Part shown: positions 36,304-62,954 of the stretch, piece by piece
How the letters are laid out: each line of letters begins with the position of its first letter
How positions within the stretch are numbered: the first letter of the stretch is position 1
Assembly: GCA_051294905.1 (NCBI GenBank)
Contig: CM119381.1
Coordinates: 26,040,001-26,104,000 of the forward strand
From: Botryllus schlosseri
Taxonomy: Eukaryota
Reading direction: 5' to 3'
DNA: 64,000 nucleotides
Notes under the pieces: model-generated
Told to the model about the DNA's origin: nothing
Seen by the model: the letters and a program-made list of their open reading frames with translations, nothing else
Database searches by the model: none
Made by a program: the position numbers and the translations under genes

Positions 36304-36555
36304 ATGGAGGAAGTAAATGTTAATTCTTTGATCCCAACCGAATCGACATTTGACGTATTATTGCGGTATTTACTGTTCGTCGGTGGCATATTCCAAATAA
36401 TCTGCATACTCGCGGTGATTTTCGTTCCAGAAGACCACGGTTTTTCTGCTGATCATTCAAGTGAAAATAACCATCAGATACGAAACAATCCTCAAGCGGC
36501 GCATAAAGAAAATCGAAATAAAAAGAGAAAGACTGAAACCAAAAAAAGGCGTTAA
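36304..36555 (+). CDS. MANBAL: MANBAL / UPF0239 small membrane protein, 83 aa, uninterrupted CDS
   Basis: PTESTFDVLLRYLLFVGGIFQIICILAVIF...KKRKTETKKRR matches MANBAL [29 protein letters not shown]...KKETKKKR. First ATG is 36304. Confidence 0.9.
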   Translation: MEEVNVNSLIPTESTFDVLLRYLLFVGGIFQIICILAVIFVPEDHGFSADHSSENNHQIRNNPQAAHKENRNKKRKTETKKRR

Positions 36556-36608
36556 TCTGAATTTGTGATTTAACGCTTTGTCATTTTCATTTAAGACTGA
36601 TCAATAAA

Positions 36609-37145
36609 ATGGACACATATGTCAGAAACGAGGCATGGATATCAAAGGAAGCTGCGGAAAAAAAGGTAAACCCCCCGAAAACACATGTAGACTTGCAACG
36701 CTTGAAAATTGATAAACTCATGCGAAAACCTGACAAACCTGTCTTCATTCCGGAGGCAAAGAAAGCTTGGAAGCCCCGAGATGCCCCCGAATTCGTTCGA
36801 GATGTTATGGGCTCCAGTGCGGGTGCAGGGAGTGGGGAATTTCACGTTTACAGGCACATAAGACGGAGGGAATTTCAGAGGGAAGCTTTTCACAGTGAGA
36901 TGGAAAAGAAAGAGAAATTGGATCAAGAATATGAGCAGCTTGTACAAGCGAATAAAGAAAAGGCGGAGAGAGCGACCGCAAAGAAAAGAGCAAAGCGACA
37001 GAGGAAGAAACAAAAAATGCAGTTCAAGAAGAAGAAACTCGAAGATCAGCAAAAAGATAACGGTAAGGAGGAAGAGCAGCGGGAAAGTGATGAAGATGAG
37101 AAAGAGGAAAAAGAAGAACAGAGTTTTGTTATGGGTGGGAAATAA
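36609..37145 (+). CDS. PRKRIP1: PRKR-interacting protein 1 (spliceosomal), 178 aa, uninterrupted CDS
   Basis: Signature APEFVRDVMGSSAGAGSGEFHVYRHIRRRE; Lys-rich coiled coil; C-terminal SFVMGG. Confidence 0.96.
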   Translation: MDTYVRNEAWISKEAAEKKVNPPKTHVDLQRLKIDKLMRKPDKPVFIPEAKKAWKPRDAPEFVRDVMGSSAGAGSGEFHVYRHIRRREFQREAFHSEMEKKEKLDQEYEQLVQANKEKAERATAKKRAKRQRKKQKMQFKKKKLEDQQKDNGKEEEQRESDEDEKEEKEEQSFVMGGK

Positions 37146-38017
37146 GCGTCTGTCTAACAAGACTTAATATCTTTCACATAGCGGTGAGAAAGCCTTCGAA
37201 ACGGGGCAGCAACGGGCTCGTGCAGGCATTAAAACCTTCAGCTCGATCTCGTATCTTGTAAATCAGACCCTGCATACTTGATCTGGTTCATCTAATCATC
37301 TGCTCTATGGCGGCCTAATTGACCGCGCAGCTTTTTATATTGGATATATCGTGTTCAAACTATTAGATCACTCTTAAAATGATGTCTTCCAACTTTGAGC
37401 GATTCCTAGAATGGCCGGTTCCATTCTGACTCAAAAAAGTATGCATATCGGTATTATCATTGTGGAGTCGTTGGTGCGGTGAGATTGTTCAATCTTCATA
37501 ACAATGCCGATGTCTGGGTGTTTCAGTGCCCTGACTGTATAGTAAATTCTTGAAATTGAGAATCGGACTATACTGCCTGAGCTGTAAAAATTCAGGATTG
37601 TACTTTTTCCAGTTTTATCCCTACAAATATTGGTCCGTATCAATTTTGCAATAGATGTATTGCGATTTTTGGGGTGGACGTCCACAGATCCAAAAAGTTG
37701 CAATGTGGATCATATTAGGATACAGTTCTGGGTGAATTATTGTAGGCAATGGTATGCCTTTTGAGAGGAATAGTAAATGATTGTGCCGACGAGCGACGAA
37801 TCCAAGAGTTGATGTTGTTTCATTTGGACATGAACAGTGATGAATCAAAAGTCATGAGCCTAATATTATTTACAATTTCAATTGTCAGTTTTATTGATCA
37901 TTATTCCAAGTCTCTGATGGTATTAATATTGTGTTACTTGTACAATCCGAGTGCGGGTTGGTTACATTTTAACATTGCTTTTTTAATTGGCCAGGCGATA
38001 GGTTATCACTTTCCGCC

Positions 38018-39856
38018 ATGCCTACTATATGCAGAAAATGTAATCCGCGGCACATGAAATATGAATTGCAATGTGCTCTGCGATCCTGTCAATCGAGGGG
38101 ACTGTTACAGACTGTGAAATGGCTCGCGGAACAATCGCTCTCCTTAAAATGTGAACCAGAGAAACCAGATGGAGATGAAGAGAATCAACGATACGTCGTT
38201 ACTGGTGATGTTGATGCTGAGGAGACACGCTCTAGAAGCGAACTGGATAATTTCGCTGTTGCTAAGTCATACTTCGATCTCGGGGAGTATGATAGAGCAG
38301 CTTTCTTTTTGGCACAAGATACTTCGAATATTGGATACTTTTTACACATGTACTCGAGATATAAATCTGCGCTGAGAAAGAAACAGTTGGGACGCATAGA
38401 CGACCATTCCACTTCAAACAGAGTGCACTCTAAAAACGAAGAGTTGCGCGTGTTGAGAATGGAACTTTCTAAAAAGCATAAAAGCAATAAGTTGGATTCA
38501 TTTGGATTATATCTCTACGGAATTGTGTTGAAAAAGACGTCAGAAGGTTTGGCGCAACAGAGTGAAGCTACTGACATCTTGTGTCAATCCGTTAAAGCAT
38601 ACCCCATGAATTGGAGTGCTTGGTATGAGCTATCTAATGTGATCGCAGATCAAAATATGTTGTCAAATCTACACCTTCCAAAACACTGGATGAGAGACTT
38701 CTTCTATGCAATTACACACGTTGATTTAGTCAATATCGATGACGCATTCCCGATATACAATGATCTCAAACTATCCGGATTTAATGAGAGTATACACATC
38801 AAAACGCAAGAAGCAATAGCTCATCATAACAAGAGAGAATTTGACGAAGCTATCACAATGCTGGAAGAATTGCACCGAGAAGATCCATACCGCATTGAAC
38901 ATATGGATATCTTGTCTAACATGTATTACGTAAAAGACCGTAAAGTTGACCTTGCGCATTTAGCGCATCATTGCTGTGAAGTCGACAAATATCGTGTTGA
39001 GACATGCTGTATCGTTGGAAATTATTACAGCATGCGAGTTATCCATGAAAAAGCAGTTATATACTTTCAAAGAGCTCTCAAGCTCGATCCGAATTATTTA
39101 GGAGCGTGGACTCTGATGGGGCACGAATACACAGAGGTCAGCAACACGTCTGCCGCTATTCAAGCATATCGTAACGCTGTTGATTTGAACAGGCGTGACT
39201 ATAGAGCATGGTATGGACTCGGGCAAACCTACGAGCTGTTGAAGATGCCGTCTTATTCTCTGTATTACTACAAACACGCTCATAGGTTGCGTCCTTTCGA
39301 CTCTCGCATGATTATGGCTTTGGGAGAAACCTACGAAGCGCTGGGTCGCACGGAAGAAGCCAAGATGTGCTACAGGAAGACTGCCGCTGTCGGAGATATA
39401 GAAGGGATGGCTCATGTAAGACTTGCGAAACTGTATAAAGATGAAGATAAAAACGATTGGGCTGCATATTATTACGACAAATATCTCTGGCAACTTGAGG
39501 AACATGGGATTGTCGCCGATACAAAAGCACACACGGTCGCTTACGTGTTTCTTGCGAATTACCACTTGAAGACGACAAAAAATTACGAAGCAGCCACCTA
39601 TTACGCACACAAGTGCCGAGAATTCCCTTCCGTCCGAGAAGAGGGGAGTGCCGTGCTCAAACAGATTTCTCAATTGAGAGCAGTGTCCGGTCATAAACCA
39701 ATCGACACACTGCCGGCTGAGTTAGCACAGCCAACACCGACGCATAATATGATTGCTAGTGTCGCTATGGACACGGATTCACCCGGTGGCGATTTTGCAC
39801 CTATGAAATTGTCGTTTTCACCTGGCCCTGTCGATTCTGATACTAGTAATCTTTAG
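38018..39856 (+). CDS. CDC23: APC/C subunit 8 (CDC23), 612 aa, uninterrupted CDS
   Basis: RGLLQTVKWLAE, AKSYFDLGEYDRAAFFL, DKYRVETCCIVGNYYS, AWTLMGHEY, DYRAWYGLGQTYELL; TPR array. Confidence 0.97.
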   Translation: MPTICRKCNPRHMKYELQCALRSCQSRGLLQTVKWLAEQSLSLKCEPEKPDGDEENQRYVVTGDVDAEETRSRSELDNFAVAKSYFDLGEYDRAAFFLAQDTSNIGYFLHMYSRYKSALRKKQLGRIDDHSTSNRVHSKNEELRVLRMELSKKHKSNKLDSFGLYLYGIVLKKTSEGLAQQSEATDILCQSVKAYPMNWSAWYELSNVIADQNMLSNLHLPKHWMRDFFYAITHVDLVNIDDAFPIYNDLKLSGFNESIHIKTQEAIAHHNKREFDEAITMLEELHREDPYRIEHMDILSNMYYVKDRKVDLAHLAHHCCEVDKYRVETCCIVGNYYSMRVIHEKAVIYFQRALKLDPNYLGAWTLMGHEYTEVSNTSAAIQAYRNAVDLNRRDYRAWYGLGQTYELLKMPSYSLYYYKHAHRLRPFDSRMIMALGETYEALGRTEEAKMCYRKTAAVGDIEGMAHVRLAKLYKDEDKNDWAAYYYDKYLWQLEEHGIVADTKAHTVAYVFLANYHLKTTKNYEAATYYAHKCREFPSVREEGSAVLKQISQLRAVSGHKPIDTLPAELAQPTPTHNMIASVAMDTDSPGGDFAPMKLSFSPGPVDSDTSNL

Positions 39857-40033
39857 CAATACTCCTCATTGAAGTAGCTGACTGCGAATTTATTCATTTG
39901 ATTCATAGACCTTACAGTCTGAAAGTCATTTGACAAGGGTGGGGACAGTTTCTTACCTATTTCAAGTGCTTGTATTAGTAGTATATGAGGTGACATAATT
40001 TCATACAGTATGCCTCAAGTAGTCCATGTAGAG

Positions 40034-40310
40034 CAGTGGTTCTCGAACTTTTCTTGGAGTGCGTATCAACAATTTAACAAAAAACTCGAATTCACTCCAA
40101 ATGTACGTAGAATTATGGACCATCATGTTTCTTCTCTGCAAGCTCATTTAGGTGGGCTGCAACCTAGTCAAATGATGCGTAAAGCATGCAACTGCATTCG
40201 ATGAAGATGTCTCTTAGATTGGAAAAAATAACCTCTGCAATTTGTGAAACTGGCATTTTTCTTGAAAAAGAAATACAGTTACTGTATGCACCACAGGTTG
40301 AGAACCACTG
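40034..40310. mobile_element. CAGTG-type hAT MITE between the convergent CDC23 and MIOS stop codons
   Basis: Ends CAGTGGTTCTCGAAC / GGTTGAGAACCACTG; TSD degenerate (ATGTAGAG / ATTTAGCC). Confidence 0.75.
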
Positions 40311-40359
40311 ATTTAGCCTAATGCAAAGTAGAAGTTGATTATCATGCTGCAGGTGACAA

Positions 40360-42993
40360 TCATGTCAACAAATTCAGTGCCGAGACGCAATTGCGACAGT
40401 CGCATAAGCATCCGGACACAGGGCAGTCGTTGTGTGCTGTAAACCATTCCTTGATGTGTTGCCGATGGCCGCCATGTTGACAAGATGAGCACCAAGTGAA
40501 GGAATTCTCAAGTATGACACCGTCTCGGTACGGGTCGTCTTCGAATTCGCTATCCGCTTGCGACGTGCCTAGTCCCAAACAGCAAATGGAACATCTTGGC
40601 AGAGGTTTGCGGCATTGCGGGCAGCTTATAGGCTTGCTGGCGTTTCCGCTACCCTGAATCTTTATCCCGCGACCTCGAGATACGGAAAATTTCGGATGCA
40701 TTATGCCTTTACCGCAGAAATTGCATAGCACGGATATTCCTTGGTAAGTATACTCGGATCGTTGCGAGGAATTGGGCTTGCCCAAGACTGTGTCGAACCA
40801 CGCTCTCTCTTTCCATAGTTGCCATAAATCCAGCAGTTTTCTGTAACTATTAATTATGAAACCGGCATTTTGATTCCGGGTAATATCAGATGACCCTCCC
40901 TGTATTAATCCAAGGGCGGCAGTTTGGACGTCCTTTGTTCTGTCAATGTACGCTTGCAGGAGTTCAATGCCCAAATCTGTTGTCAGTCCAGTAGCGATAA
41001 TACCGTCCAAGCAACCATTTTTCGCAGCATCATCACTCAATTCATCCATAACTACTGAAAGGCTCTCATCGTCTAAGTACATACAAGCGAACCCAATGCG
41101 GTCCGAGATACTGACCTCTCTCATTTTTAAAATCGATCTGAAATCAACTTTCGGCTCTTTTAAAGCCTTCAAAAATGCGAACGCAGCTCTGAAATACGGG
41201 CTCGGCATGTCTCTTTGGAGGTTGTCACACATTTCTCTCCATAACGGTGTCGTGTCATTAGCTGCATAGCCACTGAAAGCCATCGCGACTACAGCATACT
41301 GATAGGCCATGTCACCGTTACAATTTTTCAGTATACTAATCGCCAATTGCATGTCTAAATGCCACAACGCTAACACAGCGGCTCGTTCCAGATTTTTTAA
41401 TTTAGACAGGGACATCTTGAATTCAGTCGAGTCCTTTCTGATTTGGCATATACTGTACCAATCACACATGTTCAACGCTCTTCTCCTGTGTTCGCTGGAA
41501 TATATGGAGCATGATGAAGATGGAACTCCTATAATTGAAAATGATACACCTGAGCTGCTCGTCTGCTTCAGCTCTTTCTGGAGACCACAAAATCTACTGT
41601 TCAGTACTGTAGTAGAGCTTGCACTCCGTCCCCACGGTGGTCTGCCGCCATGGCTGAGGTTTGGCTTCGTGTCTTTCATGACAGAGATAGGGTAACTTTC
41701 TTTTGCAAGCTTTATCCATTTCCAAAATAGTCGCAAGCTTGTGTTATCTGGTTCTAAATTCACTTTGGAGTTTCCGTGGTCTTTCGAGTGATCGAGACCG
41801 TATCCATTTTTGGATCTCTTGTATATGATCTGTTCGATGTCGAGCAAGTTTGCTGCGTCGGAGGCTTGCTTTTGTTTGCCAAAATACTGGTGAATATGCT
41901 TGCAAGCGGTGACAAGTTCAGATTGATTAGTCCAGTTCAAAGATATTCTTTCAGGTATTTTCATTCTGTGTACAATTCCAGAATCGGTTACAGCTACAAG
42001 TCGATTTTCTGAATAAGGCAGCCATGCAATTGATGCTGTCTTCTCACTTGCGTTTAAAGGCAGTTTAACGATTTGTTCTACATGTCGGTAAACAATATCT
42101 GATTCACTGTCAGTAACTACAGCATGGGACGTATCATACACACGCACAACGTTCCGTTCACCCGACCCACTAGATATAGTAGCTAGGAAACCGTTTCTAG
42201 TGGGACACCAATCTGCTTTAATTACATTGCCCCTTGTCGATATGGTTGCGGCTGGTTTGGAAAAGCTTCTCAGATCCCATACATTAATTTGGTTTTCATA
42301 AAACGAAGCAAACCGACTGTCCAAGCAAGGATCTTGACATAATCCGAACACAGATTTTGTGTTCACAACTTGACTCGCAGTACGAAACGATCTCATGTCA
42401 TACAAACGAAGGAATTTTCCATTAACACCCGCTACCAATGTCCTAGGTTCTCTGTCAGACCACATGATTGAGTTTACGGCTTCCGAAAAGCACGATTCTG
42501 TTTGTCCTCTCAATTTATTATCAATAAGTCCAGTGACGTGTTCTTTCTTTGGTCCTTCTTTGAGCAGATTAGTAACAATTAAGGAGGACTCAGATCGACT
42601 TTTATCAAATCCAAAAGCTAAATACTCTGGCTGCATTTTATTCCAAGCCAGTGCTTTGCAAGACCTCGATGCTTGATACAGGAGAATATGGTTGGAAGTC
42701 AATGATTCCGGGTAACTGGGCCAAAGCATATAAACGCTTCCATTTTCCAATCCCACAGCCAATGAAATAGGATTTGTGGACTTTCCCAAACAGCACCATG
42801 TCATGCAGTTAATATTCCAAGAGTCGACATGCTGAGGTAAATCCGGCAGGGTGGCAGATGTAAGGTTGAAGTCGTTCTTTGTCAGTACCCCGTCATATTC
42901 ATTGGAGGATGGATCCAAATGAAGAAATTTTATGGAATCGTCCACATCCAAGGCCAGAAGACCTTTCCGTGATGGATTAGCTAGAAACTTCAT
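40360..42993 (-). CDS. MIOS: GATOR2 subunit MIOS, ~877 aa, uninterrupted CDS
   Basis: WD40 N-terminus (LAVGLENGSV, INVWDLRSF), SDRIGFACMYL, TKDVQTAAL, LLDLWQLWKERAWFD, C-terminal CPQCRKPLPRCSIC...FTWCSSCQHGGH...WF...CPVSGCLC. First ATG is 42993; the ORF-track start at 43038 is GTG. Confidence 0.95.
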   Translation of the reverse strand: MKFLANPSRKGLLALDVDDSIKFLHLDPSSNEYDGVLTKNDFNLTSATLPDLPQHVDSWNINCMTWCCLGKSTNPISLAVGLENGSVYMLWPSYPESLTSNHILLYQASRSCKALAWNKMQPEYLAFGFDKSRSESSLIVTNLLKEGPKKEHVTGLIDNKLRGQTESCFSEAVNSIMWSDREPRTLVAGVNGKFLRLYDMRSFRTASQVVNTKSVFGLCQDPCLDSRFASFYENQINVWDLRSFSKPAATISTRGNVIKADWCPTRNGFLATISSGSGERNVVRVYDTSHAVVTDSESDIVYRHVEQIVKLPLNASEKTASIAWLPYSENRLVAVTDSGIVHRMKIPERISLNWTNQSELVTACKHIHQYFGKQKQASDAANLLDIEQIIYKRSKNGYGLDHSKDHGNSKVNLEPDNTSLRLFWKWIKLAKESYPISVMKDTKPNLSHGGRPPWGRSASSTTVLNSRFCGLQKELKQTSSSGVSFSIIGVPSSSCSIYSSEHRRRALNMCDWYSICQIRKDSTEFKMSLSKLKNLERAAVLALWHLDMQLAISILKNCNGDMAYQYAVVAMAFSGYAANDTTPLWREMCDNLQRDMPSPYFRAAFAFLKALKEPKVDFRSILKMREVSISDRIGFACMYLDDESLSVVMDELSDDAAKNGCLDGIIATGLTTDLGIELLQAYIDRTKDVQTAALGLIQGGSSDITRNQNAGFIINSYRKLLDLWQLWKERAWFDTVLGKPNSSQRSEYTYQGISVLCNFCGKGIMHPKFSVSRGRGIKIQGSGNASKPISCPQCRKPLPRCSICCLGLGTSQADSEFEDDPYRDGVILENSFTWCSSCQHGGHRQHIKEWFTAHNDCPVSGCLCDCRNCVSALNLLT

Positions 42994-44998
42994 GTGTAAA
43001 TTGCTGCAATGCAATGACAGATGATGTAAAAACCACACAAATTCATTAATATACTTGCAGGTTCACAAATTCATCAGTTGGTTTTACACAAATGCTGATT
43101 CCGTTAGGAATGCTCATGAGGCCTATATTACATGAGCTCTCAATACACTAAATAATCATAGACATAGCCAAGATCATCATTTTGAAGTGAATTCAAATAT
43201 GGGTGGGGGGAATTCTAATAACCTGTCGTTGCCGATTCATTTTGATGCAGTAAAAACATATGACATCACAAAATGCATGTGGAAAATTTGAAGTCCTTTT
43301 TCTACCAGTGGCAACGCAATTAAATAAGATCATAAACAATTTTTATTGCAGTACAATATTACTGAATATAGTATATTCCTATTGAAATGAACCCGAATAA
43401 TATACTATTCCGAGGTAAGAGTTTCATTGACGGAAAGTTGTTTCAACTAAGTCTATTTTTCATTATTTTGCAATTACCAAGTTATTTTGAATCAATGAAA
43501 TATTTGAAAGAATGGCCTTTTAGGCTAGATTCTGCTCAGTACTACATCAAAATGACCCGAAATTGGCATGCAAATCTACTTAATGAACCATATTTAGCAC
43601 TATGAACTAGAAGATGCAAATTTCTTCACATTAAACAATCAAAACCAACCCAGATTGTAAATCTAACAAAAGTATGCAACTCAAAACAGAGATTTGAAAC
43701 TTTGAATCAACTTTCGAGAATTTTACCGCTGCTATCTTTTTGATACTACTGAATATTCTGCAAGGCAGAGCCCCCTTAAAACCATCACCTCGATGTCGGC
43801 TGTTTGCTAGATTCTATTCATCATAATGTCGCTAAAAATTGTACTGTCGAATTTTGTTAAAAAAGACTTCTTAGCTTGGGACAAGTCGAAAGTACCGTAG
43901 CCTATATAGTCCATAAACGTTACATCTCGTCAAATTACATTCTAATTCTAACACTGACATTCTAATGGTGTTTCATTTCTCTAATTATCGAAAAGTCTTC
44001 AAGCTCAACGTTTTTCAATTAACAATAAAATCGGAATACATTCGCCGGTCCACCGATCAGTGGTTGAAACCAATGATGATGATGATGAAAACCACTGGTC
44101 TGTAGTCTACATGAAAAAGTATTTGACATGCCCTCGAGCCTCTACGGGCAAATTGATGGATTATATTTCCCTCGTCAGTTAATTTCACAATACCTCTCAA
44201 TAACACCTGCATCAGGCGATATAATCATCAGGAGTTTGAACCAAAAGCAGAAGCACTGCTGAAGCATTGCCATGTCAGCTAGATTGAAAATTCAGCATCA
44301 CGTCGGCAATGGAAATATTCACCAAAAGGGTGCGCTGTTCGTCTCACATCGAAATCGTAGTTTTGAGTTCGATTCCGACCCGCCAGGTGATGCGAAAGGG
44401 CTTATGGCAAATCGGAATAAATAGTAATCTATGCAAACGTAGCGCCGACTTTCCATGCCTCCTTCACGTGACGACCGTTGATAATGCTTTGCAACGATGC
44501 GATTGTCAAGGTGCCGAGGTGGGTGTATTTGTAGACGCGGTGCTGCTGAAAATATCGACCGGGTCTTGTGACGGTCTGTAGCGAAGATTAGGAGCGCGGA
44601 GAGTCGGAATGATTTCTATAATAGTAATAATGAGCGAGAATCAGTTGTTGCGTAATTGCCGTCACGCTATTTTGGCCCGCATACCATAAGAAATAGGTTG
44701 TTAATGGGCGTTCGTTTCCGCCGTCGCTCAATTCGTGCGGAATGTATCCGTCTGCATTAATCGTTTGCAGTCTTCATGTCATTACCATGCTTATTAGATA
44801 TTGCGGTGCTGTCACAGCCGTCGTTTTCGAGATTCACGGTTTAGACTATCATTAGTGTAGCTTCCGACAGTTTATATTCAGTATGCTTGAAATATCGTTG
44901 CGTAATCACCAAAATGCACTTCGCGCGTAACGTTAGTGTGAGTTATAGCAGTTTGCATGTGAGCAATTATAATCTCCGGATGCTTACAGGTGTGTAAT

Positions 44999-46840
44999 AT
45001 GAGATTGAATATATTTTGCGTCTGTATCCTGTTCTTTCCGCTACAAGGCTGTGTCACTAAGCAAGCCTTGGCTACCGATGAGCCAAGCTACGAGGAAAGT
45101 GCGCGCCAAAGGCTGTTTTCTTACACCACGGATAACAAATTCTCGGAATACTTAGATGAGACGGTTTTCATCCCGATATTTGTGAGGAACAAGGAACATT
45201 CTCTACCTTACTTCTTCAAGGCTATCGAGGATTTGGATTATGACAAAAAACGAATTTACTTATGGATTGTATGTGATCACACGAAAGATGACTCGGCATC
45301 TCAGATAGACGCATGGGTTTCCGGTGTGCGGTCACAATATAAGAGTGTAGAAACGGAAATAGACACTGGAGCATGGCATTATCCTGGACAGAAAAGCGAT
45401 TTGTCTTGGACTACAGAACGTCACTTGAGGATGTTGGAGCTGAGACAGAGAGCATTAATAAAAGCCAGAGAAATGTGGGCCGATTACATTTTTTATGTGG
45501 ATGCTGATAACATTCTTATGAATCCTTCTACGATTCGTCATCTAATTGATAAAAATAAGGTGTTAGTTGCACCGATGCTTTACTCTCCATCGTCATATAC
45601 AAATTTTTGGGGAGGTATGAACAATCAGGGATATTATGTAAGGACCGATGAATATTTTCCAATAAGAAATAATGAGATTAACGGGACCTTTCCTGTTGCT
45701 TTAATTCATTCAACCTACCTTATTGATCTCCGGAAGAGGAAGTCAAGAGAGATTCAATTTCTGCCTCTCCGCAAAGATTACAAATATGATTTGGATGACA
45801 TCATTATTTTTGCAAGCCATTGCAAATCTGTAGGCGTTGAGATGTATGTCGACAATACTGTGTTTTACGGATACATGCCAGTACCTTTGGACGAATCTAA
45901 ATCATTAGAAGATGATTCTGACGCATTCATACATTTGAGAATGGAAGTAATGACAGAACCGCCTGTTGGAGTTGGAATTGAAATGCAGAAGTCTGCTTAC
46001 ATTCAAGAAAAAGTCCTTACCCCGACGAAGTTAGGGTTTGATGAAATATATGTTATCAATCTGAAGAGACGCAAAGATAGGCGTTCGCGCATGAAAAAAG
46101 TCTTGAAAATGCAAGGCATTGATTACACCATTTTTGATGCCGTCGACAGCAAGACTTTGGGTGAAGATTATCTCGCTGAAATGGGCATTAACATGCTTCC
46201 AGGGTTTATAGATCCTTATTCTCAACGTACCCTAACGTGGGGCGAAATCGGATGTTTTATGAGCCACTTTCACATTTGGGACGATGTCATTGAAAAGAAT
46301 TATGCGCATGTCGTTGTTTTGGAGGACGACGTTCGATTCCAACCGTCATTTGTCCGTAAGGTGACTGATTTAATGGGGCGAATAAAGGCCGCCAATTTGA
46401 AATGGGACTTGATATATCTTGGACGGAAAAAATTGAAAAATGTGGATGAGTTCCCTATCACGGAAGTTGAAGGTTTAGTAGAAGCGGGGTATTCCTACTG
46501 GACTATAGGATATTTGCTGTCGAAATCCGGAGCAGAAAAACTGAAAGACGCAGACCCTTTGTCTCGTATGGTGCCTGTTGATGAATATATCCCAATTATG
46601 TTTGACAAACATCCGATAGACGAATATTCTGAAAATTTTGCACGTAGGGATCTAATTGGCCTGTCCGTTGATCCACTGTACATATATCCAACACACTACA
46701 CAAAAGACGTCAATTATTTTAGTGACACCGAGACATCATCTGTGTGGGAGGTGGATGTAAATGTAAATGATGAAAGTGCGGATGACGTAAAAATAACAGA
46801 TGATAAAGTTGCACATCACCGCGCTAAGAATGAATTATAA
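44999..46840 (+). CDS. COLGALT1: Procollagen galactosyltransferase (COLGALT1/2, GT25), 613 aa, uninterrupted CDS
   Basis: Signal peptide; VRNKEHSLPYFF, YVDADNIL, NFWGGM, EIYVINLKRRKDRR, GEIGCFMSH, LEDDVRF, YWTIGY, PVDEYIPIMFDKHP, YPTHY, SDTETS; ER-retention-like C-terminus KNEL. Confidence 0.93.
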   Translation: MRLNIFCVCILFFPLQGCVTKQALATDEPSYEESARQRLFSYTTDNKFSEYLDETVFIPIFVRNKEHSLPYFFKAIEDLDYDKKRIYLWIVCDHTKDDSASQIDAWVSGVRSQYKSVETEIDTGAWHYPGQKSDLSWTTERHLRMLELRQRALIKAREMWADYIFYVDADNILMNPSTIRHLIDKNKVLVAPMLYSPSSYTNFWGGMNNQGYYVRTDEYFPIRNNEINGTFPVALIHSTYLIDLRKRKSREIQFLPLRKDYKYDLDDIIIFASHCKSVGVEMYVDNTVFYGYMPVPLDESKSLEDDSDAFIHLRMEVMTEPPVGVGIEMQKSAYIQEKVLTPTKLGFDEIYVINLKRRKDRRSRMKKVLKMQGIDYTIFDAVDSKTLGEDYLAEMGINMLPGFIDPYSQRTLTWGEIGCFMSHFHIWDDVIEKNYAHVVVLEDDVRFQPSFVRKVTDLMGRIKAANLKWDLIYLGRKKLKNVDEFPITEVEGLVEAGYSYWTIGYLLSKSGAEKLKDADPLSRMVPVDEYIPIMFDKHPIDEYSENFARRDLIGLSVDPLYIYPTHYTKDVNYFSDTETSSVWEVDVNVNDESADDVKITDDKVAHHRAKNEL

Positions 46841-47830
46841 CGCAGATATAAGTATCGTACTTCAAAATTCTCCCAAGCTAATATCGATAGCTCTACGCTG
46901 AATGAAATGATGAACTTTTGAGCTCTTGAGCATTTTGTATAAGGAATTTATAATGACCAATGACCATTTTATATAGCCTAGAACATAATTTTTTTACTTG
47001 ATTATTTTATGCAGTAAAAATAATGATTTGAGATCTTACAACAGTTTAAACTGATTAATGAGATCATACTAAATAATGAGATCATTTATTGTGATATACT
47101 CCACATAGGTACAATGGAGTGAATTCAATCATTATGCATTGAAGGGAGACTGTGACAATTTTTGCTACCAGTTATTACGCATTTACACAGGATGAATGTT
47201 TCCTTTCTATCAATATTTTGCTCGATTTCAACATGTCTACGTATATTTCTACGTTTGTTACAAAATCGACCACAGTTAAACTTGAAAATAGTATGTGCAT
47301 GATACATCGTCTAATCTAAATCTATTGACTTGATGGCCTAGTCAAACATCCTTTATACTACCGTATATTTTATATACTCTGTTCAATCTGTAGCCAGATA
47401 TTGTGAATAGATAATTATTAATCATTTTACAAGAGACTCATGCTAAAGGTAATATCAAAATTTAGCACTATGCTGGTTGTACATAATTGGTTATATCTAC
47501 TCGTGATTCATGTCTTGGTGAAATTGTTGGATCATAATAGCACGCACAGAAGTTGTTACAAAATCATTTATATATAATAAGACGTTTTTTGCAAAGAACA
47601 CTATTGCCTATTCTGCCGATTTTTATAGATGCTCCACTGCCATATTCTTTCCGCTGAAAATTGTCAAAATTATGCCGCACATGTACTGTTCTGTTGCAAT
47701 TCTCAAAGCGACTGAAATGTGACTTAACACTGCAAACTTTTTCAGATTAAGTCTGTCTCAGACTTTTGGCTTGTGTTCTTCATTCTTTTTAAGTGGCCTT
47801 GTGACAAGGCTGAATAATCAAGACCAGGCA

Positions 47831-48853
47831 ATGCCACAATTTACGAAGGAAGACGTTGAAAGCGCTAAAAAGGACAACCGTACCTTGTTGGTGAAGAACC
47901 GACGCGTTTTTGATATATCGAATTTTGTTAATATCCATCCTGGAGGCAAAGAGATAGTGACGAAATGGCATGGAAAGGATGTATCCACGATTATGGAGAA
48001 AGGCACTCATAAACACAGCGAGAACGCTTACAGATGGTTAGAGCAACATTACGTCGGGGATTTAGTGGAAGAGAAAGATGAAAACGCGAGTAAAGAGATC
48101 CCGCAGACACCAGATTTGGTGAATTGGTCAGAGCCTGTTGTATGGCAAGTCGGACATTTAGGGGCTAAATATCACGACTGGGTAGACTCGCCAGTCGACA
48201 GACCCCTGCGTTTGTTCAAGAGTGACTTTGTGGAATACTTTTCCAGCACCAACTGGTATGTGATACCGGTGTTTTGGATACCGGTTATAGTCATGATTTT
48301 GCTGACGACGTACCGCGGTTACAGTGAGATAGTGTTCTTTCAATCCTTACCGTTCATTAGTTTCACGTGCTCCAACGTAGTGATGATTCCTTGCTTTGTT
48401 TTCGGGATATTCGCGTGGACCTTTTTGGAATACGCCCTGCACAGGTGGTTGTTCCACGCCAGCCCACCTGTGTCGTCATACTGGCTAATCACGTTGCACT
48501 TTCTACTGCATGGGCAACACCACAAGGTGCCTTTTGATAAAGGAAGGTTGGTGTTTCCTGTAGTTCCTGCTGTTGTAATGGCTAGTATGCTGTATTCGCT
48601 ATTGGCTGTGTTCTTAGACACACCAGTCAGACACACCGTCCTTGCAGGCATTCTTGCTGGCTACTTGGCTTATGATTTAACCCATTATTATTTGCATTAT
48701 GGGTCCCCATCTAAGGGCGGATATTTCTATAACTTACGGGCATACCACGTGAGACATCACTTTCAGAATCCAGAACTTGGGTTTGGGATATCAAGTAGGC
48801 TCTGGGATTACCCTTTCAACACATTACTCACAAAGGTTAAGAAGTACGAATAG
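47831..48853 (+). CDS. FA2H: Fatty acid 2-hydroxylase, ~340 aa, uninterrupted CDS
   Basis: Cytochrome b5 domain (HPGG, HKHSENAYRWL) plus His boxes HRWLFH, HGQHH, HYYLH, HVRHH; GFGISSRLWD. Confidence 0.96.
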   Translation: MPQFTKEDVESAKKDNRTLLVKNRRVFDISNFVNIHPGGKEIVTKWHGKDVSTIMEKGTHKHSENAYRWLEQHYVGDLVEEKDENASKEIPQTPDLVNWSEPVVWQVGHLGAKYHDWVDSPVDRPLRLFKSDFVEYFSSTNWYVIPVFWIPVIVMILLTTYRGYSEIVFFQSLPFISFTCSNVVMIPCFVFGIFAWTFLEYALHRWLFHASPPVSSYWLITLHFLLHGQHHKVPFDKGRLVFPVVPAVVMASMLYSLLAVFLDTPVRHTVLAGILAGYLAYDLTHYYLHYGSPSKGGYFYNLRAYHVRHHFQNPELGFGISSRLWDYPFNTLLTKVKKYE

Positions 48854-51309
48854 CTTCCGATGCTTGTTCTAACCATCTTCACGTTGTTTATCACCCATCT
48901 ATTAAGTTCTTTTTAACTGTTGTTTCAGAGCGAGGTTGCTCTGCAATGATCGAAGCACTTGTCCAATGTGTTGTTATGGTCTATGTAACACACAGCGACA
49001 GCAGGCTCATATGTATATCCTCAAATGTCTCATATGCAGCATTGGTGTCCATAAAATTTCGACAATCATGGGCTAATCACTGATACATTCTTGTGAATAG
49101 TAATAGAATTGGTGGCATTGCATCTTTATAAATACATCATTGCCTGCTGGCGATTTTGTGACAAATTGGGATCTTTTTAGATTGTGTTCGGTCATTTATC
49201 CATTCTACAATTGGCAATGACTCATGTTAATTCTTCCCTATTCCTATCTTACGGATTCTGTTAGCTAGCGTAGAAAATGATAGCTTGATGTCGAAGCCTA
49301 TTTTTAGTCCGTCTTTGCAGTTTCACTTTGCTTCTGCATAACTGCACGGAACGCGTCACTTTAAAACTAGCAGGGGGTGTCCCTTTTGAGCACAAGAAAT
49401 TTCTTCAATTGCTGCAACATTTTGTTTAAGTTCTATATTGTGGACCGTTGAGGACCTCGATCGAATTGACCCGTGTCTATTGATTTCATCATCAATGATG
49501 TCGGGTTGACCATATTTTTGTTAGCAAATTTACCCCTATGCAAAATTTCCAGCAGAACGTCTATGTAAAGTTCGGGGTTTGGTTTCTTGCTTTCTCCTAT
49601 TAGTTAGCCTATAGAATGAAATAATGGCATGTTTCACTTGTATGTGATGCAACGTGTTTGCGTTTTCGCACTGATTAGTCCCGTGCATGTTCCAAATCGA
49701 GGTAATCACGAGTTAATCGACCAGCACTCATTTCCAACTGTTTTCGTCAAACTCCCATCAATACCGTAATTGCTCTCAAATTGACGTTTGTATTGTGTTA
49801 ACTTCAGTACTTAGTCATGTAACGGGGCATCATTTATAATCCCTGAAGTTTTTTTTTTGTCAAACATCAACATGAAATCCATTGTCACCTCACTATTCAA
49901 CTGTTTGGCTTCTCCAATATCTGCCATAGTGCCATTACTCATTTTTACCAGGGTAATTTGCCGCAGATGCATTAAAATTTAGGGTAAATTGGTTTAGCCG
50001 GGGCAGTCCATTGTGGATAGATCATTTATCGCTCATAACTCAATGAAATTTACAGTAAATATTGTGTATTAGTGTGTCTTATATATATCAGTGTGACAGT
50101 CATTTTTGCTACTGAATAGTGGCAATTATTAGTGAAAGTGTCCGACTGAGCCTACTTGGCTTTAATAACTGAATATGCCTCATTTCGAAGAAAATATTAT
50201 ATTAATTGATTGACTAAGGGTGATCATTGCATTGACCATTTATATTGTAATCACATTCCCTTTCACCTACTTTTCGCATGTTTCAGTCCTTCATCATTTT
50301 ATGATATTTTGTTTCACAATGTTCTGAGATAGTAGATGTCATCGGTCAGTTTCTGTGCGTAACTGCCTTTCTAAGAACATATAACATATACTTTTATGCA
50401 TGTTTGAGAATTATTTACCGTAAGCATGTCATTGAATCGAATTGGAAAAACAGTTGCGTAAAATTACTTATACAACTTTTTGCCTCTCGCTTATAGAACT
50501 AGTACCGGTAATATAATTTGTGCCTTTTCAAACCATGTAATGTCGTCGATGAACTGTAAGTTGCTTTGTGGGTACAATGTATGATGGCATAGTTACTGTA
50601 TGTTATAATTGTATAATAGCGATGCACTATAAGAAAAGCACCATTAACCCAGGCTATGTATGTATAAAGCATACATGTATCACGGTACCAGCCTCGATGT
50701 TATGCGTTAATCTGATAATGCTCTGCATCATTGTAGACTCCACTGCCGTCCTAATCCTATACTGAAGCATTAGACGTCTCCAAAACTCCAATTTTTGAAA
50801 TTGTGCCCACTGTATATGTTGTGTCATTTTGTTCGTCAGTGTCAAAACGGATATGTGAATGGTAGCTTGTTATGGTAATTGCGGTATGTTTACGGTACAA
50901 TTAAGCTAGTATGTTATGTTGGCTGAATCATGGTGAATAAGAATAATTTATTGTATTATAAGTAGTGAATTTACTTGCATTGTTACTAATTAACAACTAA
51001 TGATACCAAGAGAAACCCGATGAAATTATAGTTTTTATCGTGTTAATTGTGTCATATTTTTTGCAGGTGTGTAGACTTATAATATAGATAGTTCTTTATT
51101 GGAGAAGTGCAAGCATTTGGATTTATGCGAGGGAGCGCTGGACATTATGGGTATTAGCCAATGGTTGCAGCATCCAAATTTGACCTGATGATAATGTTAT
51201 GGTAACAAGCTTATCAATTGTCGGGATGCATACATATACATGGGTCAGGGAGGGACTCCTATGTATTTAAAGAGCATCTTGGAGGTACAGAACTTCAATA
51301 CCGTGTAGG

Positions 51310-51395
51310 CGTACAATTGAATAATATATTCGTATTGAAATGAACTGGAATATTTTCGGCTGACACTCGTCAGGGGTAATCGTCAGCAACTATTT
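51310..51395 (-). repeat. Reverse partial copy of the hammerhead-like repeat
   Basis: Reads TTACCCCTGACGAGTGTCAGCCGAAAATATTCCAGTTC on the minus strand. Confidence 0.75.
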
Positions 51396-51707
51396 AATCA
51401 TTGGAGAGAACATTGTATATCAACAATCGTATCAGCTTAAGCTAAATGTACTATTTTTAGAAGGTACAGGGTACAGAAAGTCCTTCTGCAGGCACAGACT
51501 CGGTATTTTGATACAAGTTGACTCCAAGGCACCAAAATCGAAGTGGGAATGTAATGAATTGTAATGATTTGTTTGGTTCCAACTTCCAACTATTTTGACA
51601 GACCACGTAATACCGTACTTTGTGTAACTGAAGCAAAATGATTCAATCAATTCTCTTCATCATCTATGCATGCTTGCTGCTTATGCTGCCGATAATCTAC
51701 TCATTAA

Positions 51708-52554
51708 TTGGGCGAGTTTTTTGACCTGTCAGAAATTTGTCAAAATTGTAGCGTTAAGTCAAAATTTGTCAAAATTGTTCAAAGTCAAAAAATTTTTGAC
51801 GTCTGCATTACGTTTGTATCGTAGATTTTGCACTGTCGGTGAACTCATCATTTGTCACTTTATAGGCCTACCGTTGTGAAGGCCAATTGTCTGCTCATTG
51901 TGAATCATAAACGGTGAAATAAAACGGATAGGTAAACATGATTTTATGGTCAACGTACCGCAATATCCTAACTGAAGAAAGACTTCTTGGGCATTGCATC
52001 ATTCTTATATTAAGCAGTGCATGATGAAAAATTGTGATACAGACAATATTGTCACAATGAAGCAACACGGTGTGTCACCAGCAGTGTACGCACAACACGA
52101 GTGTTGTCAGCCAATAACTGCTGCTGTTGAACGTTCTTTCTCCATTCTTGGCAAAGCTTCTTAGTAAGGACATACACTTTCTACCCAAGAATGTAGGAAA
52201 GTATATCTGGTTGTACTACAACAAATTTTGATTATTTCTACCATGACATGTATTGTAACTACTGGAATTCTTCATAGGGCTAGGTTATTTGAGTACTAGT
52301 TTTTGTATGTAAAAATTTGTCTGTTTCTAAGCTAAAAACGTTTTTTCAGGACAAACTACTTCGTTAGGACAGCCAGTTCCAACCAGAAATAAAGATTAGT
52401 GGTACAATTTTAACATTATGTGGGAGAACACCTAATTTGCATACGCTAGATCAAAATTTGGTCAAATTCAGTTTGTTCATGTCAAAAAATATCAAATTTT
52501 CAATTTTTTTAGGTCAAAATTTTCCTTTTTTTCAAGTAAAAAAAAATTGCCCTA
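51708..52554 (+). mobile_element. Internally deleted hAT element with frameshifted transposase C-terminus
   Basis: PAVYAQHECCQPITAAVERSFSILG / KLLSKDIHFLPKNVGKYIWLYYNKF* (~52075-52231) is a hAT dimerisation-domain motif; GTCAAAA subterminal repeats; imperfect ends TTGGGC / GCCCTA; flanks CTCATTAA / CTCATAAC. Confidence 0.72.
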
Positions 52555-53285
52555 CTCATAACATTTATTCTGCATCAAATTATGCGCTTTTAGATCAATC
52601 TATGTATTTGAGTGAAACATATCACATCTACAATATATAATAGGGCTTGGTGAAATCGAGGACGTGGGTGTTATGACTACACTACAGTATGAATGATATG
52701 GAAAGTTCAGATATGTACCATACCTTTTGTATGACCTCAACGTTATTGATGCAAGTTCTATATCACATTAAAGATTGTTTGGTATTGTTTTACCATGCCT
52801 GTGTCATTGCACTTTGTAACAATGCTGTGGATTGATCTCGGCATCACAGAATGTCATTTCTCCTAACGTACATAGCTTTGTGAAACATGTTTTGTATGCT
52901 GCGATAGGCTAGGTCAGTAAAATCAAATTCGTAACATATTTTCATGACTGGACTTCTAAACTTGATCATAAAATTGACCTATATATTTTTAATGGGCAAC
53001 TTTATGAAAGGTGGACACGACAATCATAATAGCTTGAGATGGGACGGTTTGTTCTGTAGGCTATAATGTATAGATTCTGTTGATTGTAAATAGTTGAAAT
53101 TGCTGACGTCTTTTTATAACCCTCATTAAAAAGAGTAGTAGTTTACATGTGGTCTGCTTGCGTAGGCTGTGGGACTGTTGCTTTCTATAATCTTTATATT
53201 AGTGCCGATAATTAATAGGGCTTTCTCATTCATTTATTAATTGTCATGGTGTTTGCTTAATTCAGAAAGGGCTGTGCCCAGTTAA

Positions 53286-53779
53286 AGGGGCACGGCACTC
53301 TACAAATCACGTGGTCTCAAATTGAAGGGCAAAACGAAAAAAAATTTGAGCTAACCATTTTCTTGAAAACGCCACCGTAATGGAGCTGGAATTTATTGAA
53401 ATTTCCGCAGCAACTTCACGCTCTAGCAGTCACGCAGAGATCGAACTTGATATAGTTGCCAGCCGATGTTATGAAGGAAATACGTCGTACACGCCAAGGT
53501 GGTTCAGATACCGCGTTCAACGGAAGATGTTCAGTCAGGAGATTTATGTCAAAATCGGGCCTAGTGTATTCAATTTCTTTGTTTCATAACATCGGCTGAC
53601 AACTATATAAAGTTCGATCTCTGCGTGACTGCTGGAGCGGGAAGTTGCTGTGGAAATTTCAATAAATTGCAGCTCCATTATGGTTTCGTCCTGAAGAAAA
53701 CAGCTACGGCCAAATTTTTTTTCTTTTTCGTTATGCCCTTCAATTAGAGACCACACCATATTTAGAGTGCAGTGCCCCT
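53286..53779. mobile_element. Kolobok-like (TTAA) palindromic MITE, 494 bp
   Basis: TTAA at 53282-53285 and 53780-53783; AGGGGCAC / GTGCCCCT termini; imperfect inverted arms of ~200 bp. Confidence 0.85.
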
Positions 53780-53831
53780 TTAAGACCCTTTCTATCCATT
53801 TCAAACGGTTCATGCATTGTTCACCAATGTG

Positions 53832-54098
53832 ACCTTCATTTCACTGATTGTGCCAAGGATTTTCCTAAATCACAATTCAATTATATATCCTGTTTATTAT
53901 TATATCCTGTTTACAATATAATTTCCATGACATAAGTCTCTCTCACCTCTGTCTGTTCTATCATGGCGGCCTTCATTCAGTGACTTTTACGCTCTCCTTG
54001 TGCCAAGGATTTTCCTGTCTATCAAACAATTATGTATCCTGTGAATTATTATATCCTGTTTACGGTATAATTTCCATGACACGAGTCTGTCTTGCCTT
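53832..54098. repeat. Local ~110-bp direct duplication upstream of SIAE
   Basis: TGTGCCAAGGATTTTCCT...TATATCCTGTTTAC...ATAATTTCCATGACA begins at 53849 and again at 53999. Confidence 0.85.
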
Positions 54099-54308
54099 AC
54101 CACCTTAATCTTGTTGGCTATCAAACTCCATACTTATTTAGTTGATATCAGGATTTTTTTGTGATTGGAATGAACTCTCAATGTAATCCACGTATCTAAT
54201 ATAGTTGGGTTCCTGCTACCAAAAATGTAGATCAGTCAGTTTTAGATATGCATGAATGAGTATCCTTGTAATACATTTGTTTCTGTTGATTCATCTTCCA
54301 GTGCAGTT

Positions 54309-55982
54309 ATGTCATCCAGTAACAATTCCGGTAAAGTTGTGGCATACTTTCTGTTTGCTCTGTTTCTGATTCTTCTATTGAAGTCATGTGACAGATCTAC
54401 ACTCCAATTTGTGACGTTCATCGGGAATAACCACCGCAATGAAGCCAAATTTGGTTTAGCATCTTACTACCAAGACCATATGGTGCTACAAGCCGAGCCT
54501 TACAATGCAGTTATTTGGGGATATGGCGTTTTGGGCTCAACGGTAGAACTGTTTGTTAAAGGTAAAACATTTACCGGGCATGTTGACGATGTAATTGATG
54601 GGCAAGGGGTGTGGAGAATCGTTCTGGACCAGTTACCCCCGGGAACAAAGGCCGATGTGTCTATTACACATGAAACCAAAAATGGCGTGCGTAACATGAT
54701 CACAATTCATGATGTTCTATTTGGGGATGTGTGGGTTTGCAGTGGACAAAGTAACATGGCGTTTCCAATAGCGCACATGTTCAACTACTCCCAAGAACTG
54801 GACCTAGTGTCGCAGTATCCTGACATTAGGATTTTTACAGCAGCACAGACTACATCTGATGTGCCGTTATACGATCTGAAGTCGATATCGAGGAATTGGG
54901 AAATTCCTACAAAAGATAATGCCCAATCTTTTTCTGCAGTGTGTTGGGTTTATGCACGTCATTTACATGACGTGCTCAAAATCCCAATTGGTCTTGTTGA
55001 AACAAATTGGGGTGGTACGCCCGTTGAGACTTGGTCGTCATCCGAAGCACTAGCAGCCTGTGGTCTTCAGGCAGAGAACAACTTCAAGATTTCATTTTCG
55101 TCACGGTTCTTTACCGAATCAGAGAATGTGCCTCCGCCACACCAAAACTCAGTTTTATGGAATGCTATGATTCACCCATTTTTAAATATGACAATCAAGG
55201 GAGCTATTTGGTATCAAGGAGAGGCAAATTCTGCTTATCACAGGGACCAATACAATTGTTCGTTCCCTACTATGATTAAGGACTGGAGGTCTGCATGGTT
55301 AGAAGGTACACACGGCCACACCAATGAGGTATTCCCGTTTGGTTTTGTACAGCTCGCCTCTATCACATCATCCCCGGAAAATGGGGAATATCCTGTAGTT
55401 AGATGGCACCAGACTGCGGATTTTGGATACGTTCCTAACTCAGCGATGCCCGAGACATTTATGGCTGTTGCGTTGGACTTAGCGGACCCTGATTCACCGT
55501 ATGGGTCTGTCCATATCAGAGATAAAGAGGATGTTGGGTTGAGGCTATCTTCTGCTGCGTTACATCATATTTTCAAATTATCACCTGATAAGTCAGGGCC
55601 AAGGCCGATAGCCGCTGCGCAAGTTATTGATACCGTTGTACTGCAGTATTCTTCTGATAACTTGGTTGTGAACGATGGAAGAAAATCAAATTTTGAAATC
55701 TGTTGTCTTGGTAGCAATTGTGACGTCAGCGATTTAACAGAGTCGGGATTTGTGGAGTGGTTGCCGTCTGATATAAATGATTATGGGTCTGACACCATTC
55801 AGATTTTGGGCCAAGCTTGCAAGGATCAGTCTGGAGTGAAAAGGGTTCGCTACGCTTGGCGTTCTACACCTTGTGCCTTTAAGGATTGTCAGCTTTACTC
55901 CAAGCAAGGAGCACCGGCTCCTCCGTTTGTGATCGATGTGCAACACGATAAGGAGTCTCCAATCGGCGAAATGAATGCTTAG
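54309..55982 (+). CDS. SIAE: Sialate O-acetylesterase (SGNH), ~557 aa, uninterrupted CDS
   Basis: N-terminal hydrophobic segment; SYYQDHMVLQ, DVLFGDVWVCSGQSNM, FSAVCW, PIGLVETNWGGTPVETWS, GAIWYQGEAN, FPFGFVQL, DSPYGSVH, RYAW. Alternative upstream ATG at 54252. Confidence 0.94.
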   Translation: MSSSNNSGKVVAYFLFALFLILLLKSCDRSTLQFVTFIGNNHRNEAKFGLASYYQDHMVLQAEPYNAVIWGYGVLGSTVELFVKGKTFTGHVDDVIDGQGVWRIVLDQLPPGTKADVSITHETKNGVRNMITIHDVLFGDVWVCSGQSNMAFPIAHMFNYSQELDLVSQYPDIRIFTAAQTTSDVPLYDLKSISRNWEIPTKDNAQSFSAVCWVYARHLHDVLKIPIGLVETNWGGTPVETWSSSEALAACGLQAENNFKISFSSRFFTESENVPPPHQNSVLWNAMIHPFLNMTIKGAIWYQGEANSAYHRDQYNCSFPTMIKDWRSAWLEGTHGHTNEVFPFGFVQLASITSSPENGEYPVVRWHQTADFGYVPNSAMPETFMAVALDLADPDSPYGSVHIRDKEDVGLRLSSAALHHIFKLSPDKSGPRPIAAAQVIDTVVLQYSSDNLVVNDGRKSNFEICCLGSNCDVSDLTESGFVEWLPSDINDYGSDTIQILGQACKDQSGVKRVRYAWRSTPCAFKDCQLYSKQGAPAPPFVIDVQHDKESPIGEMNA

Positions 55983-62439: not shown

Positions 62440-62954
62440 GTAAGTCAGCTGTTTGTTTGTCTTTATTCAACATAACATGACAATATCATAGTAGGGCGAT
62501 CTTTGTACTGCCTGAATTAAGTTGCAATGTTCCAAGTCACGCAGTACGAAAAACATTATCTCATCTTTAGTCGCTACATATATTTTCACACATGTAAACA
62601 TCCATATTGCTTAATGTAATTGCATTTGTTAGCATTTGTCACATAAGTAAGAATGGGTACCATTGAGCATTTGTTGTGTGCTGTCAAGCATTTAGAACGG
62701 CTAATCGTTGGCAATGTGATAGGGGAAGTAAAAGTCGGTATACCGGTCATGCAATGAGCGTTCTTCACGAGGCATCAAAGTTTTAAAATGACTGAACACT
62801 GACGATATGACACTAACAATGCAATTTCCTGAATGGATCTAGTGGGAAGTTATTAAACGTCTTTAGTGACAGTTGCTACCGTTTCATGTAATATTATTGT
62901 CATGAGTTTGTTTGTCATTTCTGTTCATTTCTTGAAGTGTTGAGGAGGATTGTT

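Follow-up and report, generated by a model that had tools for sequence, protein, structure and literature searches.

A conserved neighbourhood of seven single-exon genes in Botryllus schlosseri whose coding introns were probably lost gene by gene

We analysed a stretch of 64,000 nucleotides (nt) from the genome of Botryllus schlosseri (hereafter the window), in which seven consecutive genes, MANBAL, PRKRIP1, CDC23, MIOS, COLGALT, FA2H and SIAE, occupy the interval 36304-55982, each as one uninterrupted open reading frame (ORF). With a probability of roughly 0.6, we read this block as an old, conserved neighbourhood of functional genes that lost their coding introns gene by gene before the split from the related tunicate Styela clava, and in which a core of four genes (CDC23, MIOS, FA2H and SIAE) is ancestral. 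On this reading, every one of the genes would have shed all its coding introns before the two species parted, and the four core genes, together with the adjacent intron-rich gene ARMC6, would already have been neighbours in their common ancestor. COLGALT and the MANBAL-PRKRIP1 pair, by contrast, would be members of the block only in the sub-lineage of the window, having been either brought in by rearrangement or lost from the block in Styela; any direction assigned to the COLGALT and PRKRIP1 moves is one that we infer.

The coding sequences (CDSs) were taken to start at the first ATG of each ORF, and all coordinates are those of the window (Table 1). All seven ORFs match the expected Pfam family across essentially the whole profile. 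Moreover, the CDC23 ORF shows a coverage of 96-100% with orthologues of ~575-625 amino acids, the COLGALT ORF one of 87-100% and the PRKRIP1 ORF one of up to 100%, while residues 57-563 of SIAE align to residues 28-521 of a 524-amino-acid protein. These end-to-end alignments with orthologues of normal length indicate that each of the seven ORFs is a whole coding sequence. Thus, the claim of the first-pass annotation that there are seven single uninterrupted ORFs at these places is confirmed, with one correction: the total that it gave, 9,801 nt of CDS, becomes 9,858 nt when counted from the first ATGs, and the lower figure fits a SIAE start placed 19 codons further in. In the spacers between the seven genes, tblastx and blastn comparisons against the related loci recovered no further conserved coding sequence. 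Contamination by cDNA or an assembly artefact was also considered and could be excluded, as identical structures are present, with non-coding flanks, in an independent chromosome assembly.

In a strongly supported CDC23 tree with the topology (lgn4,(Styela clava,(lgn2,(window,(species A, species B))))), Styela clava is the outgroup to a small clade holding the window; CDC23 of the window shares 87% identity with species B, 73% with Styela clava and 61% with Ciona and Phallusia. The window accordingly belongs to a stolidobranch ascidian of styelid type. Three loci of the Styela clava assembly GCA_964204865.2 were stitched into a single segment, OZ123515.1:10,149,960-10,196,861, which reads CDC23(+), MIOS(-), 14.4 kb without a called gene, FA2H(+), SIAE(+) and ARMC6(+), so that the five genes stand in the same order and orientation as in the window. 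There, CDC23 (613 amino acids in 1,842 nt), MIOS (878 amino acids in 2,637 nt, also convergent with CDC23) and FA2H (339 amino acids in 1,020 nt, upstream of SIAE) are single-exon genes, SIAE is one ORF between FA2H and ARMC6 (aligned over query residues 26-563), and ARMC6 is multi-exon. The remaining two genes located in this assembly lie on other chromosomes, COLGALT on OZ123518.1 (631 amino acids in 1,896 nt) and PRKRIP1 on OZ123514.1 (183 amino acids in 552 nt), and both are again single-exon, as are therefore all six of the seven genes that were located. MANBAL was not found upstream of PRKRIP1 in Styela, and the 14.4-kb interval between MIOS and FA2H yielded no relic of COLGALT, even at E=10.

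This comparison of intron state and synteny, which the first-pass annotation had proposed as a check, hence returned an intronless state common to both species and a conserved five-gene order including ARMC6. Since COLGALT and PRKRIP1 are single-exon in Styela on chromosomes other than that of the CDC23-MIOS-FA2H-SIAE segment, their intronless state is independent of membership in the block, and the wholesale regional event for all seven genes that had been suggested at first is not borne out. The companion claim, that one retro-insertion cannot explain the block, finds support.

Contigs from the Logan resource extend the comparison to three further species. In species B (SRR32906212), one contig carries the tail of MANBAL, PRKRIP1, CDC23 and MIOS(-), and a second one COLGALT, FA2H (a single ORF of 340 amino acids) and a conserved non-coding element discussed below, all genes being uninterrupted and arranged as in the window. 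In species A, CDC23 and MIOS(-) are each one ORF on the same contig. The locus from species C (SRR10746996; L010:8162-10549) has three consecutive single ORFs on one strand, namely an RNF41-like RING/USP8-interacting protein (319 amino acids), a complete MANBAL and PRKRIP1, and no CDC23 was present within 1.1 kb downstream of the latter. These contigs include over 2 kb of non-coding spacer and have genes on both strands, which suggests that they are genomic DNA.

That introns were indeed lost, as opposed to the genes always having been intronless, is borne out for two of the seven. CDC23 of Ciona intestinalis is split into 11 exon blocks over 5.1 kb, i.e., it has at least 10 introns, and COLGALT of Clavelina into ~8 exon blocks over 4.0 kb, i.e., at least 7 introns; in the window, all of these ancestral introns are absent, as in a retrocopy. 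The vertebrate orthologues of these two genes are likewise multi-exon. The introns kept in Ciona CDC23 and Clavelina COLGALT thus show these to be true whole-gene losses, older than the split between the window and Styela; on the stolidobranch stem leading to the latter two, the loss amounts to at least 10 introns in CDC23 and at least 7 in COLGALT. Further, CDC23 is a single ORF of 618 amino acids (L012:10001-11857) on a 204-kb contig (ENA ERZ25067576) whose tunicate source clusters with Ciona and Phallusia at a support of 100/100, and in that contig MIOS, PRKRIP1 and MANBAL are not near CDC23. An ancient retro-paralogy of CDC23 was ruled out, as the grouping in the CDC23 tree follows lineage, irrespective of whether introns are present. 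Judging from the tree, then, whole-gene intron loss in CDC23 occurred a second time, independently, outside the stolidobranchs; the recurrence of the intronless state in a lineage grouping with Ciona and Phallusia indicates that such loss recurs gene by gene.

These observations bear on an alternative in which the loss was regional: the seven genes would have been ancestral neighbours, whose introns were erased in a few steps via cDNAs of polycistronic transcripts (e.g., MANBAL-PRKRIP1-CDC23 and COLGALT-FA2H-SIAE), with Styela scattering PRKRIP1 and COLGALT later on. Same-strand sub-blocks suited to such a process are present, MANBAL and PRKRIP1 being paired in three species (53 nt from stop to ATG in the window, and ~15 and ~94 nt in species B and C, respectively); the window and species B have the full arrangement in common, Styela and the window both lack introns in four contiguous genes, and seven in a row would hardly be expected of independent genes. 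However, the genes lie on both strands, ARMC6 retains its introns in both species despite standing directly 3′ of SIAE, the 14.4-kb interval of Styela is without any COLGALT relic, CDC23 became intronless independently in a lineage without these neighbours, and species C lacks CDC23 in the 1.1 kb after PRKRIP1. We therefore hold a regional loss across all seven genes to be quite unlikely; a regional event limited to the four-gene core may nevertheless have taken place.

The genes of the block are under purifying selection. Between the window and either species B or Styela, the synonymous divergence (pS) is saturated at 0.64-0.91, while the nonsynonymous divergence (pN) is 0.07-0.35, and none of the species examined has a broken ORF; a pN this far below pS, together with the intact ORFs, marks them as working genes rather than dead retrocopies. 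Neither the relaxed constraint nor the broken ORFs of retropseudogenes are in evidence, and the possibility that the block consists of non-functional retrocopies is further countered by the orthologous positions in Styela. As for potential parents, the hits include a single CDC23 and a single PRKRIP1 from Styela, and the COLGALT of the window is the main stolidobranch orthologue in the tree. Styela additionally has COLGALT-like paralogues of its own (P0151, P0153 and P0234), which form a long-branch group (1.37 substitutions per site) nested within the stolidobranch COLGALT clade and hence are not intron-bearing parents. Scars of retroposition were also sought: no A-rich run was found within 900 nt past any of the stop codons, no direct repeats bracketing the genes were seen among the repeats found, and a scarcity of AATAAA in the 3′ flanks is not significant at this AT content. 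The missing scars say little about the mode of loss because the events are older than the saturated synonymous divergence, and a recent event finds no support, given the lack of poly(A) relics and losses that predate a split with saturated synonymous divergence.

A second alternative, close to the earlier suggestion of a landing zone for retrocopies that replaced their parents, is that a permissive site beside ARMC6 received expressed retrocopies in succession, including a dicistronic MANBAL-PRKRIP1, each of which replaced a parent that was lost later. For COLGALT and for MANBAL-PRKRIP1, such a history is possible. In its favour one may count that in every gene all introns are gone at once, that the neighbours of Ciona CDC23 are unrelated to those in the window, that Styela and the window have COLGALT and PRKRIP1 at different loci, the alternative site being free of relics, and that intronless neighbours occur elsewhere too (a WD40 gene by COLGALT in Styela and the RNF41-like gene by MANBAL in species C). 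Yet poly(A) tracts are absent from every 3′ flank, no parents are known, the repeats found include no target-site duplications, and ordinary DNA rearrangement, which is frequent in tunicates, accounts for the moves equally well; with pS saturated, signatures of retroposition would in any case have decayed. On balance, we deem successive accretion unlikely as the origin of the whole block. A broader version, which we consider very unlikely, would have the intronless genes of styelids gathering by repeated RNA-mediated re-insertion (again including a dicistronic MANBAL-PRKRIP1) beside other intronless genes in a permissive chromatin domain, such that blocks grow, e.g., from the four of the Styela arrangement to the seven here.

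Returning to loss gene by gene, the agent would be a reverse transcriptase, with each gene replaced by its own spliced cDNA; the replacement would have taken place at the original locus or through a retrocopy, the parent of which was subsequently lost. As the simplest account, such losses would have struck, on the styelid stem, broadly expressed genes in compact, partly operon-type neighbourhoods.

Could a run of seven arise without any local cause? We modelled independent genes in a genome of 15,000 genes, with a single-exon fraction borrowed from Ciona and not this genome's own; in Ciona, the rate is 15% outside operons and ~20% overall (PMC2760879). At fractions of 0.15-0.20, the expected number of runs of at least seven is 0.02-0.13, rising to ~2.3 at a fraction of 0.3 and to ~11 at 0.38. 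The run thus exceeds independent chance and reflects real local clustering, unless the single-exon fraction here is 30% or more; the objection foreseen by the first-pass annotation, an intronless fraction so high that seven in a row is to be expected, does not hold at Ciona rates. The corresponding alternative, i.e., a very high single-exon fraction with no local cause and the longest run picked from many windows, would be served by fractions of 0.3-0.38, which give 2-11 such runs per genome, but the overall rates published for ascidians are 15-20%, intron-less genes are reported to be fewer in Styela than in Ciona by the Styela genome paper (PMC7540406), and just one of the eight non-target neighbour genes in the sampled Styela loci is single-exon. 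We judge pure chance to be highly improbable.

Several points count against the reading of loss gene by gene in operon-type neighbourhoods. The comparison with intron-bearing tunicate genes covers two of the seven, CDC23 and COLGALT. The contigs from species A, B and C would be uninformative on introns if they were transcript assemblies, so that the Styela chromosomes carry most of the argument. Of the six junctions in the block, a single one is shorter than 100 bp, and both strands carry genes; hence, operons alone cannot account for the run. The lower count of intron-less genes in Styela than in Ciona makes a chance run of seven harder still. Finally, a conserved acceptor-like site at position 51066 hints at a possible intron in the 5′ untranslated region (UTR) of SIAE.

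Table 1. Coding regions and other features of the block and its right flank (window coordinates).
Feature	Position	Strand	Remarks
MANBAL (UPF0239), 83 amino acids, one ORF	36304..36555	+	Pfam PF06783, E=3e-17; upstream half of operon-like pair
PRKRIP1 (DUF1168), 178 amino acids, one ORF	36609..37145	+	Pfam PF06658, E=3e-41
CDC23/APC8, 612 amino acids, one ORF	38018..39856	+	Pfam ANAPC8 and TPR
MIOS (GATOR2 subunit), 877 amino acids, one ORF	40360..42993	-	Pfam MIOS_WD40, MIOS_a-sol, zinc_ribbon_16; convergent with CDC23
COLGALT (GT25 procollagen galactosyltransferase), 613 amino acids, one ORF	44999..46840	+	Pfam PF01755; divergent from MIOS
FA2H (cytochrome b5 and fatty-acid hydroxylase), 340 amino acids, one ORF	47831..48853	+	Pfam PF00173 and PF04116
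Conserved non-coding element, FA2H-SIAE spacer, 141 nt	50926..51066	+	ends exactly at TTTTTTGCAG acceptor-like site
SIAE (sialate O-acetylesterase), 576 amino acids, one ORF	54252..55982	+	Pfam SASA
ARMC6, right flank, intron-containing	57023..62463	+	seven tblastx blocks collinear with exons of annotated Styela ARMC6 (PF27652)

In Ciona, where, by the operational definition of Satou 2006/2008, two genes count as an operon if they share a strand and are separated by under 100 bp, the single-exon share is 38% among operon genes, 15% among others and 60% among the 5′-most operon genes (PMC2760879). The clustering in the window is probably the stolidobranch counterpart of this pattern, in which single-exon genes amount to 15-38% and are concentrated in spliced-leader operon-type pairs. 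Measured from CDS to CDS, MANBAL and PRKRIP1 fall within the Ciona definition, and a pyrimidine-rich acceptor-like site, TTCATTTAAG, lies 13 nt before the PRKRIP1 ATG; the two are hence candidates for transcription as an operon. More widely, AG acceptor-like sites stand 5-40 nt before the ATGs, such sites being common, and neither the window nor the compared loci contain the Ciona spliced leader sequence. The same-strand runs are MANBAL-PRKRIP1-CDC23, COLGALT-FA2H and SIAE-ARMC6, with MIOS on the opposite strand; the remaining gaps, as given by CDS ends and not transcript ends, are 872 nt, 990 nt, 5.4 kb and ~1 kb, and genes spaced by ~0.9-1 kb may or may not be co-transcribed. Beside COLGALT on OZ123518.1 of Styela (L003:12723-13790), there is a single-exon gene for a WD40 protein of 335 amino acids that ends 60 nt before the start of the multi-exon PUS7L. 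Similarly, the single-exon SIAE of Styela is followed by ARMC6 after 176 nt, so that in both pairs the single-exon gene leads.

The widest spacer of the block, the 5.4 kb between FA2H and SIAE, contains only short ORFs, an inverted-repeat element of ~500 bp and one conserved non-coding element, which is the sole non-coding conservation in the block. This latter element is 88.7% identical over 141 nt to its counterpart in species B, despite the saturation of synonymous sites, and its core is also found in Styela between FA2H and SIAE (counterparts at L006:6208-6339 and L009:8713-8747). TAAT cores are abundant in it, and it has neither an Rfam match nor a significant RNA fold. It may represent the promoter or outron of SIAE, the 3′ end of an intron in the SIAE 5′-UTR, or an enhancer; were it an intron end, SIAE would be intronless in its coding sequence only. 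No Rfam match was obtained over the whole window or in a permissive search of this spacer, and ARAGORN found no tRNA.

The inverted-repeat element of the same spacer (53282-53783) resembles a miniature inverted-repeat transposable element, its arms measuring 150 nt (84% complementarity) and 63 nt (86%), and its ORFs are without Pfam support. Downstream of it, just upstream of SIAE, is a pair of 71-nt direct repeats (53878-54097). A suspected hAT-like remnant at 51994-52164 likewise had no Pfam support and was set aside.

With respect to the flanks, the earlier description of ARMC6 as a multi-exon gene with at least 6 introns is upheld, since it has at least seven exons within the window, matching Styela ARMC6 exon for exon. 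The left-flank gene had been described as an MTUS-like gene with ~19 introns. The minus strand there has no long ORFs, but only short ones and one coiled-coil piece of 152 amino acids, a pattern consistent with a multi-exon gene; the name is unconfirmed, as the coiled-coil piece had no significant Pfam or atlas match. Between this gene and MANBAL, directly upstream of the MANBAL start, lie about three tandem copies of a ~433-bp unit (35192-36126), whose pieces are 81-100% identical.

The block thus offers a clean and datable chordate case of whole-gene intron loss, in which CDC23, shorn of at least 10 introns, and COLGALT, shorn of at least 7, have remained functional across a saturated synonymous divergence. 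The two independent losses in tunicate CDC23 point to a propensity of the gene itself (e.g., germline expression) and not to its location. The block also extends to the stolidobranchs the association of single-exon genes with compact, operon-type neighbourhoods that has been published for Ciona. It reveals no new mechanism; its main value lies in offering genome-wide studies a locus on which to test the causes of the clustering of intronless genes in ascidians.

Two known systems invite comparison. In reverse-transcriptase-mediated intron loss and the formation of 'orphan' retrogenes (e.g., PMC3652778, PMC3548309), as here, the coding introns are precisely removed all at once without damage to the reading frame, and no functional copy other than the intronless one exists. 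The present case differs in being without a demonstrable poly(A) tail, target-site duplication or parent, the events being too old in view of synonymous saturation, and in that in-place conversion and retroposition are indistinguishable in it. The operons of Ciona intestinalis (Satou et al. 2008, Genome Biol 9:R152) differ from the block in other respects: it comprises seven genes on both strands with one junction below 100 bp, while the largest Ciona operon has six genes; it comes from a stolidobranch; and at least one of its genes, CDC23, has introns in Ciona. What the two have in common are compact same-strand ascidian pairs led by a single-exon housekeeping gene (MANBAL here, and SIAE and the WD40 gene in Styela) and a clustering of single-exon genes beyond what independence would give.

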